From positions 1,240,001 through 1,304,000 of the forward strand of contig BQFW01000013.1 of assembly GCA_020891255.1 (NCBI GenBank): a DNA stretch of 64,000 bases. The letters run 5' to 3'. The position numbers were made by a program, and so were the translations under genes. Position 1 is the first letter of the stretch, and each line of letters starts with the position of its first letter. The notes below the pieces were generated by a model. It saw nothing but the letters and a program-made list of their open reading frames with translations. It did not search any database and had not been told where the DNA came from. The stretch is from Entomortierella parvispora E1425. Lineage: Eukaryota > Fungi > Mortierellomycota. Positions 6,742 to 56,202 of the stretch are shown one piece after another.

Positions 6742-8928
6742 TTATTCGAGTTCTTCGATCAACACCTTTGCTTTGCCAGTCTCTCCTGCCCGGGTCGGCG
6801 TTTCCGGTTGAGAAGGAGATACTCTTGAGACTTTCTCCATCTCCTGTTCCCATCCCATCATCTCTTGTCGGACGCGGATGCCTGTCATCACCACCTCCGT
6901 GCGGACCTGGTCCAGCCTATCTGTCTTCAGCAACCATTCGCCTGAATGCAGGTACGATGCGTAGAACTCCAGCTTTTTGACGAGCCGAGTGAGAGTGGAC
7001 CTTGAGTATAACCTCCGCCCCTTGGAAGCATCGGCTTCTATATCCTTGAGACCTTGGTTGAAAACTGCCTCCAGCTCGACAATACATTTGAGACAACGGG
7101 CAGGTCGTGCCAGGAGCAAGGTGAGATCCCGTAACAAGAGCGATAACATTTCCGGTCGAAGCGTATCGCCTTTCCAGAGTTTGGAATTCAGACTTGATTG
7201 CTGTAGCACCGCCAACGTAGTCTCAAAATCATCAACCTCTGGAACGGATGGGGGTGAACGAACAGTTGCTCCGGTAGCCTTTTTCGATGATGCAGGTGGC
7301 GGCGCAAAAAAAGGGCACAACTCAAACACATGTGTCAAGGACTGTTCAGGTTCCTCCAGCAAGTCGCCATTGAGGACTCTGCTTGTAGCTGCAAAAGCAA
7401 ACAAGAGTCCACAAATATGATAGATCAGACTTTGATGAGGTGGTCGAGTCATTGGTGGGAGACTTTTCGTCCGCTCCTCAAGCTGATGTCCAGGATAGTG
7501 CTCATCATCCAGGGTTTGGATTAACGTGCGGTGTGGTCTCAGCATGGCCTCTTCGTCGAGTACCAATCGCTCCTGTACTGCGTTCTTGGTCGAGGAGCCA
7601 TGTGCTGCCTTGTCGGGTATATTTTTTGATGAGTTGGATGATTGTCCAAGAGCTGCTGCTGCCACCGCCAGTCGATTTCCAGAGTCCGAATCGCCTACTT
7701 TGTCTGATGTTGTCACTTTTGAAACGACAACCTTTGTGAGCTGACCTGCTTCTTCAGCCTCCACCTCCCACCATGGATTCCAAATTGGAATCAATTCAGA
7801 AATTTCGGCGTCTCTAAGTGCTTTCAAATCTTCCATATCCAAGTCTGCGAGGATAGCATTGCTGGGGTCGCTACCATTGCCTTGCCGCCCCTGTTGACCG
7901 CGTTGCATGACATCCTCCATCTCCTTCATTAAAAGTCGTGCATTCTGCTCTTCCTCATCGTCGTCGCTCGCGTTGTTGTTGTCGGAAGTCTGTTTTTCTC
8001 CTACATTGCTTTCGACATCGCTGTCTTCCTCTGGTTTCCCAGAAATCATAAATCGTTCCCGAAATTCTTGTTGTTCCTCAGGATTCAATCTCGCCCAAAT
8101 GGAATCGAAGGACTCTTGGTCCAAATCAACTCCAGCGAAGCGATTCACGAAATCTTGGTATTCCTGCTCCAGTGCTTGTTCGATTTCCTCCTCGACTATG
8201 GCCGCGTCCTTGTCCAGCTCCGTTATAGACCCAGAGAGATTTTTGTTATCGAGTTGTTCCTGTTCGATGGCCTTCTGAATCAGCTCGTCACGCTCCTTTG
8301 GCGTCAGTTTCCGTGGAACCGATTTTGCCCCTGGTGTTTGCACCCCACTCTCTGAACCGGTGCCGTTGCTGCTACTGCCTCCACCGCCAACCTTCTGATA
8401 CTGTTGCTGTTGTAAAATATGATGTTGCAAAATCTCATCCTCTGTCATGTTTAAAAGTTGCTCCTGATCCACAGCCTCTCGCTCAAAACGATCCAGAATC
8501 CCGAGCATTTGCTTCCTGTCATTGGATGTCGCTCCTGGATTGGACTGCAGTTCACTCATGACTGCCGCCTTGTAAAAAGACTCTGTACATTGTGCATGGG
8601 ACTAGGAGGATACAAGAATGAGAAAGGTTTTGATTAATAACACATTCTGGGGTATTATTTTAGAGATGACCTCTACAGCGCTGGACAGATGATTATCTTT
8701 ACCTTGTCTTTATAGCATGCTAAAGAGCAGTATCGAAGATTACAACGCGGACAAGTGTATTGGAAGGGCTGTGCTTTGCAACTATAGCCAGAAGTGAAGG
8801 AATGGTTAGAGTTCGTGAGTGCATGCCTGTTCTTTGAGGGGGCCATGTGCATTTTGTAGAAAAAGCACTTACATGCCGCAGGGGTATGTATTCTCGGCGA
8901 CGGTGCGATGCTTCTTTGGGACCACCAT
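6742..8928 (-). CDS. ZNHIT2: Zinc finger HIT domain protein 2 (U5 snRNP/R2TP cofactor), 3 exons
   Basis: Spliced YPCGI|CKAQPFQYTCPRCNLRYCSLACYKDK|SHAQCTESFYKAAVMSEL continues into ORF 6742-8559, which carries PIWNPWW. Start codon is uncertain. Confidence 0.85.
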
Positions 8929-34986: not shown

Positions 34987-37900
34987 ATGGGTGTCGCTAA
35001 TGCCTTTGCGCCTCTGAAAGACTGCAAGGCCATCAAAGTCATCGACCCCAAGTCCTTAGATGGGTGTCATATCGATGGATCTGCAGTCTCCTATATCAGA
35101 CTCAAAAATACAGAAGGCCGTCTTCTCCTCAAAGCGTTCAAAAAGCAAGCGAAGGAAGTTAGCACAGCAAGCACCACGGCTTCCCCGTTGCCCCTGGGAG
35201 AATGGGATAAGGAAAACAAATTGTGGCAATTTCCATCTGCTGAACGGCCTGATGGCTCATTTTCCCAAGACGTATCCGTCAGCGTCCCCCAAAGGATATC
35301 CGCTCTTCACATCTCAAGCCCATCTTCGACCTCAAACAAGAACCCCTCCACAACAATCCCGGTTGTTCCACGACAGCCGCTTATTCAGCCCCCGTCATAT
35401 TTTGGACCAGCTTCTTCTGTGTCAGCTTCATTCCCACCAGGATCGCAGCCACTTCCAGACAACGTCTGCCACGAACTCAATAGAGCGCGCGACGAGATAT
35501 TGCCTGTTCTTGCCAGGTCCATGGACAAAATGTTTGACAACAACTACAGCAAGTCGTCCGACTATATCCATTACGATGGGACACCTACAGCTGAGAAGGC
35601 TTTTGCCCGTGAACGTCGGCTCAAAGCCAGCCTACCTGCATCTGTCAAAATGTCTGACATGCTCGCTTCGACCGAAAGACGGCTTTTACAGTTGGAATCG
35701 AAAAAAAACCTGTCCAACAATCAGCTTCGTCGGCTCAGGAAGTATCTCGGGCGCGTCGTGTTTCCACACTGGCTCAAGTGCCGTAGTGTTGACCCCCGAA
35801 CAACTAAGAATGTCGCCCTTGAACTCCATGACTCTCATGGGTGGCGTTTGCACGTCTGCAATGGCCAGTTCGACATTTGCGCTGGAAAATTGGCCCGCGA
35901 TGACCCAAACCTCACGGTGGTGACCACCGACAGTGATCTCATGTTCATGGGGATTAAGGAGTTCGTTCGTTTCCAACCTAGAGGCACCCGGTTCTATTCC
36001 TACCCTGTCGAGGAAATGATTACATTTTGTGGACTTGAATCAAAAGAGCAGTGGGTCGCAGGCGCCGTCGTAAGTCTTAATGACTATGACCCAAGCATCG
36101 GCCGGACGTCGTTCAATAGCGCCATCAAGGCAATGAAGGCCATCCGAGAGGATTTGCTTCGCGAGGACATTAATCCTACTGTTGAGGCGCATGTCGCTCA
36201 ATTCTGCTCGAAGAAAAAGGATTATGTTGAGAATGTCCAGCAGTCCATCAGTAGCTTTGTGAATCTGCAAGAGACGTTTCTTGAACAAAACCAACAGGTC
36301 AACGACGTTCTCGACGACTCGATCCGCAGGATAGTTTTTCGTTTGGGAGTTTTGACGAGCCGGTAAGGGTGAAATTTCACGAAAGACGTTATCCTGTCGT
36401 TATAACTACCAACCAATGTATTCATCATGACTTGTGCATTGCCACTTTACTGCCATCTTAGGTATCGTCAGTCGCGCATGCCCCAATCAGATGAAGGGTC
36501 GGCCATGAACATGTTTAGCGTGTCGTCAGCCGCGTTGATTTCTCCTCAGCTCGATGCGGTAACGGACAATATCGTCAGCGTGTTGGCACTTTGTCCGCCA
36601 GAGCCCGATGCTGGCTCAACCGTCGAACTGTCAACACCTCCTCCAACCACCACAAGCAGTGATCTCGATCCTGAAGTAAAGCTGAAAAAGAAGCACCGTC
36701 GAGGGTAAGACCAATGATTCTGCTGCTCGATGTTTGCACTGAAATACGACAGGCATTTGACCTTTTTTTGAACTCCTATCTTCTTCATGTCTTTATCTTT
36801 CTTTAAAACACAGCTATTGTCGGTACTCCTCTGGCCATAAATACTGCCCCAAGGCATTCTCTTCGGTCTACATAAATCCAAGCAAGAACACTGAGCCCAT
36901 CGGCTGTAGGAACATGACCATTGGCCGACCTGCTCTCAAATTCAAGATCATAGTGAAGAGGACGAAGGAGAGGAGGGCGAAGACAGTTTTCCAGCCGATG
37001 AGGATATTCAGAGCGTTGAGTCTGTCCCTCAGGACAAAAAGTCCAAAGCTGCCAAGGAGAAAAAGGCCAAGGCCGAAGAGAAGAAGACAAAGGCCGAGGA
37101 GAAAAAAGCAAGGGTTGCCGAAGAGAAAAAGGCGAAGGTCGAGGAGAAAAAGTCGAAGGCTGCCGAGGAGAAAAAAGCAAAGGCCGAGGAGAAAAAAAAA
37201 TCTAGAAAGCGACCGAGTACGACGACCTACGCCCCATCCAAGAGGAGGGCCCGAGACGAGGAAATGAAAGGAAAAGGAACTGCGGAGCAAAATGCGGATG
37301 TAAAGTCTCGGAAGAGAAATACCACCAATATCATTGGCGACATTGTCGGTGGCCATTTTCCACTGGTCGCGATGAGACCTGGCCGACTCGAGTCATGCCT
37401 CTCTCACAGCGTAAAAAAGTCGTTTCCGTCGCTCAGCGAAGACGACCGCACAACATTGGTTAAGTACATCGTCACTGTCATACGTACCATGGCCAAGGTC
37501 CATTCCGATCTCCTACGTGAGGGTCTCCTGGCGACGGAGCTCTACATCGCGACCGTATTCAAGGAGTACCCGGCAATTGATGGCGACCAAGCGCTGAGCG
37601 ATGCACAAGAGAGGAGGAGCTGGTTCAATAATCTCTTAACCCCAGCGTATTGTGGCCCATTTTTCCAGCGACTTCTCCGTCGAATGATCTACTGGGGCTC
37701 TGATGATTCTGGACTCGGCAAGACTACGTCAAAGACAGCAACAGATGCTGATGATCTTTTCGAGAAGTACAAGAAGCTCACCGAAGCTCGAAGTGCAAAG
37801 CCGTTCTTACCTAATGACGGAGACATTTGTGACAAAGCATTCATCGAGCAATGTGCAAGAGGTCTCTCTGACATGGTCGGGAGCCATGTATTCAAATTTA

Positions 37901-40491
37901 CTTTGGAACTAAAGAAGAGGGTAAGTCCTTGCAACAAAAGCTATCCTATTCTTTGCGAGCTTCACCATGACTCTAACCACACCGAATTTTTAACTGCGCA
38001 TTGTAATAGGTCATTCTCAACAACCCTGCCTGGGCTTCCTCTGTCTGTGGAAAGGAACTGTTGAACTCGATCAACGACGACGGCAAGTCTGACAAACACG
38101 ATCGGCTTAGCATGCACTTGATTATGAACATGATGCTTCCCGCAGCAGTTCAGGTCAAAACTCTGCCTGAAGTCGGGTTCGCCGACGGATTCTTCACGGT
38201 GACTGAGCGTCAACTTATTAAATGTCTTCTGAAAGACTGCAGGTTGACCAACAATCGCAAAAAAGGCACAAGTGAGAAGGACCGACAAGCCCAGATTCTC
38301 AACAGTATTTTTGGAGCAAAGACGTCAGCCGAAGCCAACACGCAGGACGAGGTCGGACGACTTTCCTTCTACCTTTTCCTCAACGGTCAGAATACTAGCT
38401 ATCGCCGTGGGGCAAACGTGCTCTGGGCCAACGATGACTTGAATGCCTCGTCCTCGTCGTCCTCGTCATCTCTGCCATCGAGCAGTACAAAATGTGCTCT
38501 GCAATCGCTACCCCTCCATTCGAGAATGCTCCTCGAGCAAAACGTTGTCGAACAGATTGAGGAAGTCTCGGCGAGACTGGATGATATGCCCGCTAGTGAC
38601 TCTAGTTATCAAGCCACCAAGGATGAGCTCAGATCCATTGTACGTGACGGTCTCCAGAGCCCTGAACGTTATCAAAGGCAGATCGACGATGCCAGCCCAG
38701 GGTCCAAGCGACCAAAATACGTTCTGAGTGGGGATTTCTCAACGAATGGTTACGATCTGCGTGTCATGGCCTACAAACTGACCGAGAAAAAACGAGCTAC
38801 AAAGACAACAGCGTCGAATGTCGCGGAGGGGTCGTTCACTTCAAGTTCCGCCGGTCCGTCTCGGTTGGCTGTGGATGATCCATCCAGTACTGGGCCTGTT
38901 CTCTCTACTTCCATCGAGATGGAATGGGAATCAAATCTCCCTCCAAGCCCCGAGAAGCAGACATCGAGTGAGCCACCGCCAGCACCTGCACTAGTATCAG
39001 TAGTGGCGTCGGGTGCAGCTTTGCCTTGGTCAACTGCACCAGTTTTGAATGGATGGCCATACATCTATGATGAATTCAACACACAGGATACAATCGACAA
39101 GCTGCACGAAGGCACTGTAGGCATGCAAATTGGCATCCGAGCTCTTTGTTTGGACCCAGGAGTCGCCTGCACAGCCACAGGCACATTGGTGCACTCCAAC
39201 TTTGAACATGATGCCATCAACTTGGTCATTCCTCGCGGCCTCAGAGACACAATCAACAGACGGTACCGCAAGCATCAAAGTAATCTCAAGTCTGCAAAAG
39301 GGATCCCAGACGTCGAGGCGAGGCTAGTATCGATGAAGCCGGTCCAGGTCGGGATGATTGCCCAGGGAGATCGGGACCAAATCATGGAGGATGTCCAAGA
39401 AAAAAACGAAGCACAGACGGGCCTAGCCATGGAAGACGTACAAACGAGCTCCGGCGATGAGTCATCGCAAACAGAGATGGGCATGATGACCTTGACCGCA
39501 GCCATGATCCAGGCTGCCCAAGAGTTCGAGTCAGCGGTGAAGACTCACATCGTGAGCCAAGCAAAAGAGTCGCCAACCCTTCGAAGTTATTACGGCAGTG
39601 TGAAGTTCAAGAAAGACAAGTATGACTACCGTGAAGCTATCCGTCATGATCTCGACTCAGCCACCACTGCAGTTCTCAGGATGCGGCACTTTGTTCCCGA
39701 TCGGCAGCCGACGGCGGATGATCTCCAGACAATCATCAACACTGTCTTGGAGGACCCCAGGAAGGCCAAGAAGGATGTCGAGGCTCTACCAGGGGTCAAA
39801 AGCTACGACTGGATATCTTACCAAAATGCTACGAAAGACTCTGGCCAGCTCTCGGGTGATGAACTCCATGCTTTCTTGTCGTCGGACCCTGTCGTCAAAA
39901 GCCTGGAAAAGATGGCTAGATCATTGTTCAAAAGGGGCTATCTGAGTCTGAATCGTCTCTCGGACCACGATCGTAACGAGTTTCTAGCCTCGCCCTTCAT
40001 TATTGGTGTTGGAGATGGGGATTATCGACGGTGGAAGGGTCAGAGTCATGGATGTGGAAAATTCACAGAGAACTTGATCAGACAGGCAAGCGCTGGCAAT
40101 CTATGAGTGTGAGTGTGTCAGTGGAGTGTGAAGACAAGTTTCTAATATCTGGAAATTTATTTGGATGAAATAGAGGCGAGATCTGGCCAAGGACCTTGCC
40201 AGGAACAAGGAAAAGAGGCCCACTGTCATCAAGCTTGTCAAGATGCCCGAATTCCGGTCTTCGGTGTTTTGTTGCTCGTGCCACTTTCGCGTGAAAGAGG
40301 AGGGCCGATCGGTCATCTGTGACGAGTGCCACAAGAGCCGCGACCGGGACCACAATTCTGCCACGAATCTGTCGCATGCGGCCATACACTTTCTTCGTAA
40401 ACGAGAGTGGCCTGCTCCTCTTGATTTTACAAAGGCGAAGCTTGCGGATCTCGCCGACCACGCCGACCACGCCAACAACAACGATGCTTGA
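34987..40491 (+). CDS. XPG/FEN1-like nuclease-Fanzor1 (TnpB-like RuvC/Zn finger) fusion. Exons 34987-36362, 36462-36704, 36814-37920 (one frame break), 38010-40085, 40174-40491; ~1,700 aa if the break is repaired
   Basis: PIN motifs MGV, HIDGS, YDGTPTAEK...RERR, TTDSDL and VSLNDY. RuvC-I LCLDPG (D at 39153), RuvC-II region IIGVGDG with downstream MPEFRSS (E at 40249), zinc ligands CCSC/CDEC, RuvC-III RDRDHNSATN (D at 40348). Four introns splice in consistent phase. Confidence 0.8.
37033..37200 (+). repeat. Coding AEEKKAK-type charged repeat inside the fusion gene
   Basis: Translation KAAKEKKAKAEEKKTKAEEKKARVAEEKKAKVEEKKSKAAEEKKAKAEEKKK in the frame continuous with ORF 37264. Confidence 0.85.
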
Positions 40492-40607
40492 AGAATGACT
40501 TTAAGCCATATTTTTACGGTATGTCATCATGTGATCTGTTAATTTGCGATTTGTTTTCACTGACTCTTGGACTGTTGGGAATAGGTGCCTGCCACTGTAC
40601 AGGTGAA
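40492..40607 (+). ncRNA. Candidate Fanzor omegaRNA: scaffold ~40492-40587 plus flank-derived guide ~40588-40607
   Basis: Lies between the stop codon and the right inverted repeat. Imperfect hairpins at ~40495-40527 (ATGAC...GTCAT) and ~40556-40581 (TTC-CTGAC...GTTGG-GAA). Inferred from known TnpB/Fanzor architecture. Confidence 0.4.
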
Positions 40608-40612
40608 GTTTT

Positions 40613-42380
40613 TCAATGTGCTTCCTCAATCTCTAACAACGCTGCCTCTGTGGGACCAGACCATACAGCCACCTCTTGTGTGGTGCTCTCCATGCATTCG
40701 ACGGCCATTTGTGTACGGAGAGCGTTGGCAAAGGCCTCGTCCTCGGCTTGATGCTGTTCGCCGTCAAGAACCATGCGTTCGATTTCTTCACTCGTGAGAT
40801 TTCCGTTCTCAGCGCTGACGGTTAGCATGTTGGAGAGATCAGCAGACCTTTGGAACGCAGAAACGATCAAGACTCCGTTAGGGTCCACCTCAAAGATGAC
40901 CTCGATCCTGGGCACCCCACGGGCCGCGGGGGGGATGCCACTGAGTTCCAACTGTCCCAGAAACCTGTTGTCACGAGTGCGAATGCGCTGGCCTTCATGA
41001 ATCCGGAGGAGGATGCTGGTTTGATTGTCGGCCACGGTGGTGAAGTACTCTGATTTCCTGGTGGGCATGGTTGAATGTCGCCCGACAATTGTCGCCATAA
41101 CGCCTCCCAATGTTTCAACTCCAAGAGACAAAGGAACCACGTTAAAAATACAGCAAAAGTTACAGGAATCGATCCATTTATCATCGGAAAGGATCGCGGC
41201 TTGTACAGCGGCGCCATGGGCAACGACCTCCTCAGGAGGAATGAACTTCAGAAGCGCCCTGTTGTTGAAAAACTCTGATACCATCTCTCGGATTTTTGGG
41301 ATACGGGTCGAACCTCCGGAGAGAACAACCTCCTCCACGAGCTCCTTCTTGAGCCTCCCAGTACTGAGAATGTTTTCAAAATGTTCAAGGATCGAAGCAA
41401 AGAGATCCTGATTCAACTCTTCGAAACGGGATTGAGACAAACTTGAGCGGAAATCATGACCGTCGTACAGAGACGCGATCTCGAGGAAGATCTCATCCTC
41501 CGTGGAAAGTCTGCACTTTGCCTCCTCGCAAGCCGACTCGAGTCGCCAGAGTGCAGTGGAGTCTCCACGAAGGTCCTTGTCGAATTTGCGCTCAAACTCA
41601 CTGGCAAAGTGGTCGACGAGTCGTTCAGTGAAAACATCGCCTCCAATGCACCTGTCCGTGACTGTACCCGTCATCTCGAAAATTCCCTCCTCGATCAAAA
41701 AGGATGAGATGGTCAAGATACCACCTCCCAGGTGAAGTACCATGATACTCCTTTCACGTTCCACTGGGGCTACCTTTTCCAAGCCGTAGGCAATGGCGGC
41801 GGCTGTTGATTGATTGATAACACGAAGAACCTCCCATCCTGCCAGTTTTCCTGCATCTTTGGTCGCCTGTCGTTGAGCATCATCAAAGTACACGGGCACG
41901 GCGATCACCGCCTTTGTAACATCGGTTCCCAGAAATGAATCGGCATCCTTTTTCAGCTTTCTCAGAATAATGGTCAAGATATCCCTTGGCACTACCTCCT
42001 TGGTCTCACCCGCATGATACAGTCGAATGCCGGACTTGCTATCCCTGCAACCAATTCGTCGCTCAGCGCCAAAAGGGGCGTTGGATAGATCCTGACTCAT
42101 CTGCTTCTTAGCATCGTCTCCAGCCGGCAGGCCCGTGTCCGAGAAGGATACAAAGCATGGTGTCAGGTTGTCGCCCTGAATGTTGGTAATGATCTGAACA
42201 ACGTCGTCCCGACAAGTAGCAATGCAGGCCGTTGTGGTGCCCAAGTCAATTCCAACAGCTATAGATTGAAAATGAAAGACGATTTGTTAGCGCTGCCAGC
42301 CCCGGGAAGGATCTAGAACAATAAAAGAAATGTAATGCCTGTCAACAAAGAGTATCGTTACATAGATTATCACTGTCCAT
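40613..42380 (-). CDS. Divergent Hsp70-like protein with degenerate ATPase motifs and no lid/EEVD; 2 exons
   Basis: GIDLGTT, AVIAVPVYFDDAQRQATKDAG, VVLSGGSTRIPKI and PQ/RIEVxFxVDxNG-type substrate-binding domain. First exon MDSDNL is joined through an intron with a CTAAC branch site. Confidence 0.9.
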
Positions 42381-53902: not shown

Positions 53903-56202
53903 TCACCTTCGTTTCATGCGGATCATGTACTTTTCAGTAGCAAGGGCTGTCGTGACAAACTGCACATAGTCATCCCTCTGGTTCGGTACGTCCTCCATAG
54001 TATATGTGAGGACCAACGTCGCCAGGACAAGCCGCATTTCCATCATGGCAAAGTTTTTCCCTACACAGTTTCGAGTCCCGGCCGAGAACGGATAGAAGGT
54101 GAATTCTTGGATCGGACTGTTCGGGAAGGGGGATTCTTCAGGGATCCAACGAGTAGGAATGAACTTTAAGGGCTCAGGGAAATAATCTGGGTTCTTATGA
54201 AGGCTTGGAATATGAGCCATCACAACTGAACAAGAGCAAACGGTAATTTCGGTCAATTATGACAAATATGGAGAAAAAAAAAAGCACGCGTCCATGGAGG
54301 GTGACTTACTAGTGCCCTTGGGAATAAAGTAGCCAGCCATCGTTGTATCTTCGGGTACTTCACGAGGAACGCCTACCGAGATGTAAATTTAAGGGTCGAG
54401 TTGTACATTCAGTTGATCAGTACTTTGATAATCGCCAATATGATTCAGCACTTATCTCTCATAATATAGCAAAGCAGTAGATCCATACCATTGGCAGCAA
54501 CAGGTCGGAGGCGCAAGGACTCATTAATGCATGCAGTCAGATAAGGCGAGTTCCGGATCTGATCGTACGCTGGTAACGATCCCTTAGGATTGCTGGCGGT
54601 CGCTCGAGTCAGCTCTTCGTGCAAACGAGTTAGCATCTCTGGATTTTTGACCAGAAACATCAAGGTATGGGTCATGGCTGTGGAAGATGTTTCTGAACCG
54701 GCGATGCTATAGACCCCACCCCAAAGATAATGGTTTAGAATCAGTTACTGGTCAGAAAGAGAAAAAAAAAAGAAAGATGGTGTATACAGAAAACTCACAG
54801 AAATAAGACAGTCTCTGTCTCCAAGGCCTTGTCAGTCAGCTTTCCGGCAATCATGTCTTCGTAAGCGTTTCCAGTCTCGCCCTGCCCATTGGCGCGTTCA
54901 CGCTCTTGAGCATCAAGCAGATACTGCAGAAGATCCGATCGTCTGCCCTCCTGACCATTATTGTGAGAGTCTTGAGCCTGCTGCTTCATAAGGGCATCCC
55001 TTCGAGCCTGGACCCTTTCCGCTCCAAATTTAAAGAACGAATTGTCGACCGGAACCAGCAATCTCAGGATGGGATTGAAGACCTGTTGAGAACTGCGCTT
55101 TAGAGACTTGGCCATGAGTTTCGGAACTGGATGGTCGTCATGAAGGACCATACCAAAGGTTTGTCCAAAGGCCGTCTCGCCAATTATATCGAGCGACAGA
55201 CGGTTCATGAATGAACAAACATTGACTGTGCCAGCGTTCAACTGGCCTCCCTTTTGGCCATTTTGGTTTTGATCCTCAAGGATTTGGTCCATCTTGCGGA
55301 GAAGGACTTGGATGCAGTCGTGCATGATGGGCTCTAGAGTCCGAAGAAAAGAGAGTCCAAACGCAGGAGCCACGAGTCGACGCTGCCACCATGTACGAGC
55401 AATAGAGAGCAGAACAAAACAGATGTTAAAATCGAGCTACTGAAAAACACTACTGCCAGAGATCTATGAGCGAGAACATTGCTTCCATGATATACCCTGT
55501 TTTTGTGAAAGTCCTTGTTCCTAGACGAGAACAGGTTGTGTTGCCCATTCAACTCTAGCCTCTCATGGATGATACTCTTTGGATAATCAATGGTGACAAG
55601 GATCTCCCGGATTGCGTCCTTATCTGCCACAGAAATGATTTCCGGGGCTAAGGAAAAAGAATATTCTCGTTAGCATCGAGAAATCATTTTCACATTGAGC
55701 TTTCCTTTGCCAGACTCTATATATCCTCAATGCTTACCCACGCGCATGACCTTCCCGTAGCGCTTATGACCATAAGGTATAAGGTAGTGTCTATTCAGGA
55801 TATCAGGGTATTTTAGTCAAGAGTTTGTTCTGGAGCAGTGAAGATATTGACAACTTGAAACCTTTCTCCCTACGAGTATCCGGTATGCTGTCCAACTGCG
55901 GTGAAGAAATACGAGATGTTCGTCCAGCTTCCTGGAACATGACTTAATGGATGGAAGTATCTGGTATATACGGCCTACAAGTCGAGCAGAAAGTCAGTAT
56001 TCTGCTTACTGGTCAGTGCGTGTTAACACACACTAGGATTCTTGGCACATTCATTTACACGTCGGATGAAATCAAGCACCGCAAGCGTAAGGATCAAACG
56101 AAGAACACCAGAAGCAGGCTTCTTTCGTAGCTTGTCGATGTATTGAGTCAGCCAAGCTTGAGCCCATCCTGATAATCCTGTCAATTTTGACACTGTCGCC
56201 AT
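53903..56202 (-). CDS. Cytochrome P450 copy 2, multi-exon, apparently intact
   Basis: AGSETS, ESLR, PTRW and FSAGTRNCVG. The exons translate in register with copy 1. Confidence 0.92.

Follow-up and report, generated by a model that had tools for sequence, protein, structure and literature searches.

Architecture of the locus

The stretch analyzed here, hereafter the window, comprises 64,000 nucleotides of contig BQFW01000013.1 from the fungus Entomortierella parvispora E1425 and contains, on its forward strand, a five-exon gene carried as cargo by a transposon. The gene unites two predicted nuclease domains, an N-terminal one related to the XPG/Rad2/FEN1 family of 5′ nucleases and a C-terminal one resembling Fanzor1, a eukaryotic homologue of TnpB. 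That the two are fused, and that the fusion is carried by a transposon, is close to certain. A first-pass annotation of the same sequence had predicted a protein of about 1,700 amino acids whose exons are joined by in-phase introns. The size holds at the level of the family, where the related locus L003 gives an intact product of 1,705 amino acids, but not for the window copy, which meets a stop at codon 691; likewise, the four introns do keep the phase, but exon 3 carries a 7-nucleotide deletion relative to the locus L001.

Introns 1–3 have GT–AG borders and intron 4 is of the GC–AG type, all four joining the exons in phase (Table 1). The GCAAGC donor of intron 4 is kept in both L001 and L003 and is the one used by the NCBI model EMPS_09849; a GT donor was also sought for this intron and discarded, there being none ahead of the in-frame stop. 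Intron 3 is conserved in L003 (6042–6121), which is 45% identical to the window copy, with its LELKKR/GTAAGT donor, branch point and acceptor, and it accounts for an apparent break of the reading frame at 38061. A programmed −1 frameshift at that point, considered on account of tblastn matches overlapping in two frames at three loci, was rejected, since there is no slippery site and the conserved intron suffices.

The second irregularity of the frame is a true lesion. Alignment with L001, a 96–97%-identical paralogue, reveals that 7 nucleotides are missing from exon 3; a small intron near 36936 was ruled out as the cause of the frame change, as L001 reads straight through with 7 extra bases. 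Because of this deletion the spliced coding sequence has a length of 5,120 nucleotides, which is not divisible by 3, and the product of the window copy as assembled has 690 amino acids, terminated by the TGA at 37265–37267. Seven placeholder N at the deletion restore one frame of 1,708 codons. The five-exon gene ancestrally coded for one polypeptide of about 1,708 amino acids, and the window copy is a young pseudogene, recently disabled in the linker, or the product of an assembly error. In consequence of the frameshift, the protein of about 1,700 amino acids is the ancestral product and not the one encoded by the window copy as assembled.

The N-terminal domain belongs to the XPG/Rad2/FEN1 superfamily

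Every XPG-like motif that the first-pass annotation had listed for the N-terminal part was found in its place (Table 1), and, judged from the sequence, the set goes far beyond chance. The key residues of exon 1 are D30, D197, K204, R211, Q294, D296, D315, D317 and D366. When the seven metal ligands of FEN1 (D34, D86, E158, E160, D179, D181 and D233) are taken as reference, six acidic ligands are found in the window (D30, D197, D296, D315, D317 and D366), the seventh position being occupied by Q294. The gateway lysine and arginine, equivalent to K93 and R100 of FEN1, are present as K204 and R211, and in alignments of hidden Markov models the spacing D197-x6-K204-x6-R211 equals that of the Asp, Lys and Arg of XPG and EXO1.

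HMMER, run exhaustively over 1.84 billion representative proteins, retrieved 75 relatives, and residue conservation was assessed in 36 of them, at just 20–25% identity. K204, D296, D315 and D317 are invariant in this set, and D197, R211 and D366 are each present in 35 of the 36. Position 294 is a glutamate in 28 relatives and a glutamine in the other 8, the wider family having the motif GEAD, which resembles the YEAD of EXO1, and the clade of the window having GQFD. A metagenome scan was seeded with 7 close sequences, no stretch of the 36-sequence alignment being conserved enough for this purpose.

The relationship emerges from profiles and from the predicted fold. A single-sequence phmmer search against the PDB returned no match for the XPG-like exon or for exon 4, and Pfam searches of the relatives detected XPG_I in 12 of 41 (best E-value 6.6e-5), XPG_I_2 in 2 and the poxvirus FEN-like family G5 in 1. 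A profile of the 36 N-terminal domains, searched against the PDB, matched XPG, EXO1, FEN1 and Rad2 with E-values between 4e-10 and 1e-8, XPG/Rad2 being the best or near-best matches, and also GEN1. The AlphaFold model of the domain has a mean predicted local distance difference test (pLDDT) score of 86.4 and a predicted template modelling score of 0.81, with a disordered insert only at residues 92–155. Its first 48 Foldseek matches in the PDB are all FEN1, EXO1 or Rad2 (probability 1.0, E-values down to 1e-7), in agreement with the fold that the first-pass annotation had expected. On this sequence and model evidence the domain is a divergent member of the XPG/Rad2/FEN1 superfamily, recognizable just by profile or fold. 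It is assignable to no single cellular subfamily, lying roughly equidistant from XPG, EXO1 and FEN1, and its conserved residues suggest a catalytically equipped and apparently selected 5′ structure-specific nuclease domain.

The C-terminal domain resembles Fanzor1

The C-terminal motifs were likewise all located where they had been reported (Table 1). In a Pfam search of every open reading frame (ORF) piece, the last exon alone matched, passing the threshold of PF07282 (Cas12f1-like TNB) with an E-value of 4.8e-6 and 27.1 bits against a gathering cut-off of 26.3. The RuvC site of Fanzor proteins is known to be rearranged, with the RuvC-II position occupied by Gly or Pro and a Glu some 45 residues downstream serving as the alternative (PMC10530073), and the pair G500/E536 has been described as specific to Fanzor1 (PMC3627910); here the Glu of MPEFRSS lies about 49 residues past the Gly at RuvC-II. 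The motifs G-[IL]-D-P-G, G-D-G, E-x2-[TS]-S, CxxC...CxxC and RDRDHNxAxN are conserved in all clades of the family, and the succession E-x2-(T/S)S...CxxC...CxxC...RDRDHN is kept throughout L003–L007.

A structural model was built on P0002, the spliced C-terminus of the 86–96%-identical L001 copy (pLDDT 69). The top Foldseek matches of this model are all Cas12, Fanzor or TnpB structures with probability 1.0, including Cas12b, SpuFz, PpFz, Cas12f and TnpB; the Fanzor1 structures SpuFz and PpFz occupy ranks 2–4 and Fanzor2 rank 24. The model therefore bears out the TnpB-like RuvC assignment made from the motifs. At the level of single sequences the similarity is low: phmmer with P0002 reached TnpB at an E-value of 1.2 and matched no Fanzor, and when P0002 was used to look for Fanzors of ordinary size without an XPG domain, members of the Mortierellomycota family alone came back. 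The C-terminus is, from its motifs and its predicted fold, a Fanzor1-type homologue of TnpB, with a RuvC-I Asp, a Gly plus a relocated Glu, a zinc ribbon and a RuvC-III Asp.

The two domains form one polypeptide

Relatives of the window copy combine the two domains, as the first-pass annotation had anticipated for a true fusion. The clearest case is P0062, an uninterrupted ORF of 1,168 amino acids (L007:1899-5405) that runs from an XPG-like N-terminus through the middle of the Fanzor part to RuvC-I and RuvC-II; the last exon of L007 follows after one short intron downstream of it. L003 splices to its intact ORF through four introns with the same positions and phases as in the window. NCBI models containing both halves exist in Mortierella sp. 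14UC, Benniella and Linnemannia gamsii, and the order XPG-like to Fanzor is colinear in all 11 distinct elements whose downstream DNA was retrieved to a sufficient length, the weakest case being L018, with a single Fanzor match at an E-value of 0.004. The named members come from Entomortierella, Mortierella, Linnemannia, Benniella, Haplosporangium and Gryganskiella, all of them Mortierellomycota. The protein nearest to the large exon in the databases is EMPS_09849, with 86% identity. Between the nuclease halves lies a disordered linker of about 250 amino acids, first acidic and then basic, the basic part resembling a nuclear localization signal (NLS).

A reading without fusion, in which adjacent XPG-like and Fanzor genes give rise to separate transcripts, is implied by several public annotations. 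NCBI models split the locus (EMPS_09849, which covers the C-terminus only; FBU30_003995 plus FBU30_003994; EDD11_008344), and an in-frame stop follows exon 2 if intron 2 is retained. This reading is nonetheless very improbable, given the single ORF of L007 that covers both parts and the single spliced ORF of L003 with its identical splice sites. Moreover, the frame is open from intron 2 as far as the first residue of the split “Fanzor” models, the first in-frame Met occurring only at 37264, and the peptide RY[ST][ST]GHKY...TIGRP directly after intron 2 is conserved. The fusion is real at the level of the family, and intact full-length copies are present elsewhere in it.

Public databases present the fusion gene divided or truncated into the separate hypothetical proteins named above, and one JGI model bears the label 5′-3′ exonuclease. 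The fusion has gone unnoticed because the gene has four introns, one of them GC–AG, and an XPG domain that is invisible to Pfam.

A Tc1/mariner-type transposon carries the gene

The homology between the window copy and L001 (Entomortierella parvispora BQFW01000013) spans exactly the element, at 96–97% identity, while the flanks are unrelated. The same termini delimit L003, L008, L009, L019 and L022. The ends read TA-TGGTGCAC... and ...GTGCACTG-TA in the window copy, L001, L003 and L008, and the right ends of L009, L019, L020 and L022 agree with the latter; directly after CTGTA the flanks diverge in the window copy, L001, L003, L008, L009 and L019. L003, L008 and L009 are three 99%-identical copies with different flanks. 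The core of the left end, GTGCACGTCACCTA, is the reverse complement of the right end of these three copies at 14 of 14 positions, and the left terminus matches the right end of the window's own element at 16 of 23. The element is a TA-flanked transposon with terminal inverted repeats (TIRs), of the Tc1/mariner (DDE_3) type, and represents a family distributed across Mortierellomycota. The presence of Fanzor1 in TA-flanked mariner-type elements was already known (PMC3627910).

In L003 and L008, and also in L002, the fusion gene is preceded, inside the left end, by a DDE_3/Tc1-like transposase gene (Table 1). Its direct Pfam matches are weak (HTH_33, 2.6e-3; DDE_3, 0.043), and many of its close homologues carry PF13358 (DDE_3) or bear the name Tc1-like transposase. 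This transposase is absent from the window element, which is therefore a non-autonomous copy.

Such a setting invites the explanation that the XPG-like domain trims flaps or gaps at excision and integration sites, or is inactive or structural, and in either case takes no part in guided cleavage. As transposon cargo the gene adjoins the DDE_3 transposase in autonomous copies, the clade of the window has Gln at one metal-ligand position, and the mariner element PGv-1 carries an additional, separate nuclease (GIY-YIG) alongside its Fanzor (PMC3627910). We consider this explanation unlikely: six or all seven of the acidic residues and the Lys/Arg pair are kept at 20–25% identity, which argues for a selected catalytic function, and in every element examined the fusion partner is the Fanzor and not the transposase.

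Two further features of these elements were observed. Internal-deletion derivatives (L017:491-1909 and P0036), in which a portion of the Fanzor region follows immediately on the XPG-like start, are comparable to those known from other DNA transposons. L003 carries the sequence GGATTTT(T)GTCAAATAA close to either end (~215-235 and ~8712-8730), the copies being in direct and not inverted orientation, and the left one is also found in L002.

A conserved hairpin at the stop codon

The last codons of the gene and the first ~30 nucleotides past the stop show a conservation of their nucleotide sequence that the adjacent peptide does not share. An 8-bp hairpin spans the stop codon, with a minimum free energy of −7.9 kcal/mol (z = −5.4), and it folds in every member of the clade (z between −3.8 and −5.4). 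Its 40 cells are all paired, with compensatory changes in three of the eight pairs; the resulting score was reached by none of 500 shuffles and is above all slid controls. The conservation of the 3′ end and the covarying hairpin indicate a functional noncoding element, acting as RNA or as DNA.

In the distant clade a hairpin is placed right after the stop codon, its stems being unrelated and its loop an invariant GUGGA (L004:8811-8827, L006:5076-5094 and L007:5627-5646). The 3′ untranslated region (UTR) has ~350 nucleotides in L003 and L019 versus 75–125 in the window copy, L022 and L020, and the extra ~240 nucleotides are conserved between L003 and L019 (L003:8600-8900; L019:8090-8400).

The hairpin bears on the proposal that the XPG-like domain acts on RNA, cutting the RNA polymerase II transcript where a single strand meets a duplex, for example at the base of the stop-codon hairpin, and so freeing or maturing the guide RNA at its 3′ end. 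In both clades the stop codon is the very place of a strongly conserved, covarying hairpin, a guide embedded in a eukaryotic mRNA needs some form of release, and the model of the XPG-like domain also matches the 5′-3′ exoribonuclease XRN2, at the lower rank of 49. FEN-superfamily enzymes recognize junctions between single strands and duplexes. The best matches in sequence and fold are, however, DNA enzymes (FEN1, EXO1 and XPG/Rad2), TnpB-family proteins process their own guide with RuvC, and other Fanzor1 proteins function without a domain of this kind (PMC10432273). The proposal is an unlikely one, if slightly better placed than the role in transposition considered above.

Table 1. Positions of the features of the locus; coordinates refer to the window unless preceded by a locus name.
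Feature	Position	Strand	Remarks
Whole mobile element	34354-40599	+	~6.25 kb, TA to TA; no transposase gene
Left terminus	34354-34372	+	TA + TGGTGCACGTCACCTAG; terminal inverted repeat
Exon 1	34987-36362	+	Predicted XPG/Rad2/FEN1-family 5′ nuclease domain, 459 amino acids
MGV start	34987	+	XPG-like part
D30 in HIDGS	35068-35082	+	XPG-like part
D197 in HYDGTPTAEK	35569-35598	+	XPG-like part
D296 in GQFD	35863-35874	+	XPG-like part
D315/D317 in TTDSDL	35923-35940	+	XPG-like part
D366 in SLNDY	36073-36087	+	XPG-like part; H3TH-like NDY motif
Intron 1	36363-36461	+	99 nucleotides, GTAAGG...TTAG; codon split after base 2; donor at the same codon position in L003
Exon 2	36462-36704	+	Linker; peptide QLDAVTDNIVSVLAL kept in L003
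Intron 2	36705-36813	+	109 nucleotides, GTAAGA...ACAG; Gly codon split, likewise in L003
Exon 3	36814-37920	+	RYSSGHKY...TIGRP, then acidic, Lys/Glu-rich and basic NLS-like segments; Fanzor N-terminal region begins
Exon 3 homology	36814-37920	+	Matches residues 350-720 of single-ORF relatives
7-nucleotide deletion site	36935/36936	+	Alignment of window copy and L001
Intron 3	37921-38009	+	89 nucleotides, GTAAGT...AATAG, phase 0
Exon 4	38010-40085	+	692 amino acids; Fanzor N-terminal (REC/WED-like) region, RuvC-I, RuvC-II position with Gly
RuvC-I LCLDPG	39144-39161	+	Exon 4
GVGDGDY, Gly at RuvC-II	40005-40025	+	Exon 4
Intron 4	40086-40173	+	88 nucleotides, GC–AG, donor GCAAGC
Exon 5	40174-40491	+	RuvC-II Glu (relocated), CCSC...CDEC zinc ribbon (TNB), RuvC-III, stop codon
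MPEFRSS, relocated Glu	40243-40263	+	Exon 5
CCSC...CDEC zinc ribbon	40270-40329	+	Exon 5
RuvC-III RDRDHNSATN	40339-40368	+	Exon 5
8-bp hairpin across stop codon	40486-40506	+	GCUUGAAG-AAUGA-CUUUAAGC
Conserved motif CCAnnTTTTACGG	40506-40519	+	Directly 3′ of the hairpin
Right terminus	40582-40599	+	TAGGTGCCTGCCACTG + TA; inverted repeat; reverse complement TA-CAGTG..., Tc1-like tip
Right flank	40600-40625	+	Predicted guide template, by analogy with TnpB/Fanzor1 guides (PMC10432273, PMC10530073)
Upstream transposase gene	L003:443-2625; L008:304-2486; L002:5604-7180		Three ORF pieces, probably with introns

Genomic surroundings

The element is flanked on the left by a sulfatase gene and on the right by an Hsp70-family gene on the minus strand (40613-42244; Pfam HSP70, 1.6e-149). 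Its right end lies 14 nucleotides from the stop codon of the latter (40599-40615), so that the insertion is in or beside the 3′ UTR of the Hsp70-family gene, and a guide derived from the flank would match there. Elsewhere in the window there is an array of direct repeats (30046-30487) with units of ~135 nucleotides that are 75–83% identical. A diverged inverted duplicate of ~1.5 kb (12346-13881 and 53907-55605; 66–75% identity) may go back to two ancient copies of a different repeat or gene.

A possible two-nuclease homing module

We favor an account in which the two domains act in succession on the same DNA site. A transcript crossing the 3′ end of the element would supply a guide matching the flank, as in TnpB and Fanzor elements, and the Fanzor module would cut the transposon-free site beside a TA-containing motif of the left flank. 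The tethered FEN/EXO1-like module would then process the 5′ ends or flaps of the staggered break, and repair would be steered to homologous recombination from the transposon-bearing copy, not to end joining, resulting in retention or homing. Three published lines of work inform this scheme. TnpB promotes the retention of its transposon by guided cleavage and homologous recombination (10.1101/2023.03.14.532601). SpuFz1 resides in a TA-flanked element, has a CATA target-adjacent motif beside the TA insertion site and makes staggered cuts (PMC10432273, PMC3627910). T5 exonuclease, a FEN-type 5′ nuclease, raises editing efficiency and deletion size when fused to Cas12f, Cas12a or Cas12j (PMC12337685, PMC12490065).

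The XPG-like domain might instead nick the displaced non-target strand at the bubble junction of the R-loop, the double-strand cut then being divided between the two active sites. XPG cleaves specifically at bubbles and junctions, the profile of the domain matches XPG/Rad2 best or nearly best, and the domain is covalently tethered to a module that forms R-loops. The full RuvC triad is, however, conserved family-wide, so that RuvC should cut both strands as in other Fanzors, and a disordered linker of ~250 amino acids suggests a loose tether and not a composite active site. A shared cut is accordingly improbable, on a par with a role in transposition.

Several observations weigh against a guided-cut and end-processing function, or against reading it from the window copy. 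The window copy is frameshifted, and its nearest copy, L001 (L001:6847-11542), has decayed too, with a frameshift in exon 1, the loss of ~250 codons across the exon 3/4 boundary and a D-to-G change in RuvC-I (LCLGPG). The window protein has no Pfam XPG match at E ≤ 1, and the Gln at position 294 makes full nuclease activity uncertain in its clade. Beyond the hairpin, the stretch from the stop codon to the right end showed no conserved structure resembling an omega-RNA, RNAalifold keeping the hairpin only; the 3′ region of the window folds no better than shuffled sequences (z = +1.56), and an Rfam scan of 34000-41000 gave no match. Finally, the TA at the ends could belong to the repeat instead of being a target-site duplication.

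With these points taken into account, we assign to the favored account as a whole, that is, the architecture together with a guided cut followed by end processing, a probability of roughly 55%. Its more specific parts are put forward with greater reserve. By analogy with TnpB, cleavage of the vacant site followed by end processing, so that recombination restores the element, is a tentative assignment that falls somewhat short of even odds. To the same degree it is conceivable that the protein constitutes a natural two-nuclease RNA-guided homing module, whose FEN/EXO1-like part would resect or de-flap the break, or would mature the guide at the hairpin.

Comparison with known systems and significance

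The fusion shares with Fanzor1 (SpuFz1 of Spizellomyces punctatus and PpFz of Parasitella parasitica) the predicted TnpB-type RuvC fold, the Gly with the relocated Glu, PF07282, the presence of introns, a basic NLS-like stretch and a TA-flanked TIR carrier, comparable with SPu-1. It differs from them in its size, 1,200–1,700 amino acids instead of about 600–700, in its N-terminal XPG/FEN domain of 300–460 amino acids and its long linker, and in a sequence similarity to other Fanzors that is too low for phmmer. MCi-2, a long Fanzor from Mucor with 1,375 amino acids (PMC3627910), has a different start and resides in a different kind of element.

With EXO1, FEN1 and XPG (Rad2) the N-terminal domain shares the predicted fold, the N and I regions, the residues D30, D197, D296, D315, D317 and D366, the D-x6-K-x6-R gateway pair and the H3TH-like NDY motif, and the wider family has the EAD motif of EXO1. 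Unlike these enzymes it lies below the Pfam thresholds, is borne by a transposon and is fused to a Fanzor; the clade of the window, moreover, has Gln at the position of FEN1 E158 and EXO1 E150, and a disordered insert of ~65 amino acids.

A parallel in design is found among engineered proteins. Fusions of T5 exonuclease to Cas12f/CasMINI, Cas12a, Cas12j and Cas12o1 also tether a FEN-type 5′ nuclease to a RuvC nuclease of the TnpB/Cas12 family, and they show higher editing efficiency and larger deletions (PMC12337685, PMC12490065, PMC12581816). Whereas these combine a phage T5 enzyme with CRISPR effectors, the fungal fusion, a putative two-nuclease enzyme, is natural, co-evolved and carried by a transposon. 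PGv-1 is likewise a mariner-type element with a Fanzor and a second nuclease (PMC3627910), but it belongs to a giant virus and its transposase, GIY-YIG and Fanzor are separate genes, whereas here the XPG-family domain is in the same polypeptide. The proposed logic, guided cleavage of the vacant site and restoration of the element by recombination, is that of TnpB in IS200/IS605 elements (10.1101/2023.03.14.532601). Those elements use an HUH transposase, unlike the DDE_3 cut-and-paste type found here in a eukaryotic host, and the added end-processing nuclease may substitute for host resection or bias it.

No mention of such a fusion was found in the main Fanzor papers, and no published combination of Fanzor with XPG, of Fanzor with Mortierella, or of a Fanzor with a flap endonuclease in a natural fusion was retrieved, although literature coverage was incomplete and an earlier mention is possible. 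Fanzor1 in mariner-type elements is known; what is new is that a second, conserved nuclease domain has been joined to such a protein.

What Fanzor does in eukaryotic transposons is an open question of the field. That both active sites are kept over deep divergence argues that selection acts on the steps after the cut, namely resection and the choice of repair pathway, and the fusion makes the hypothesis of homing or retention directly testable in a eukaryote. For technology, where the gain in editing from fusing T5 exonuclease to small Cas12-family nucleases was discovered independently (PMC12337685, PMC12490065), the family is a source of eukaryotic domain pairs, linkers and NLS-like segments that are naturally co-adapted. 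If the favored account is true, these transposons would dictate their own repair pathway, and the fusion would be a natural counterpart of the T5 exonuclease–Cas12 editors, conserved across a fungal phylum.

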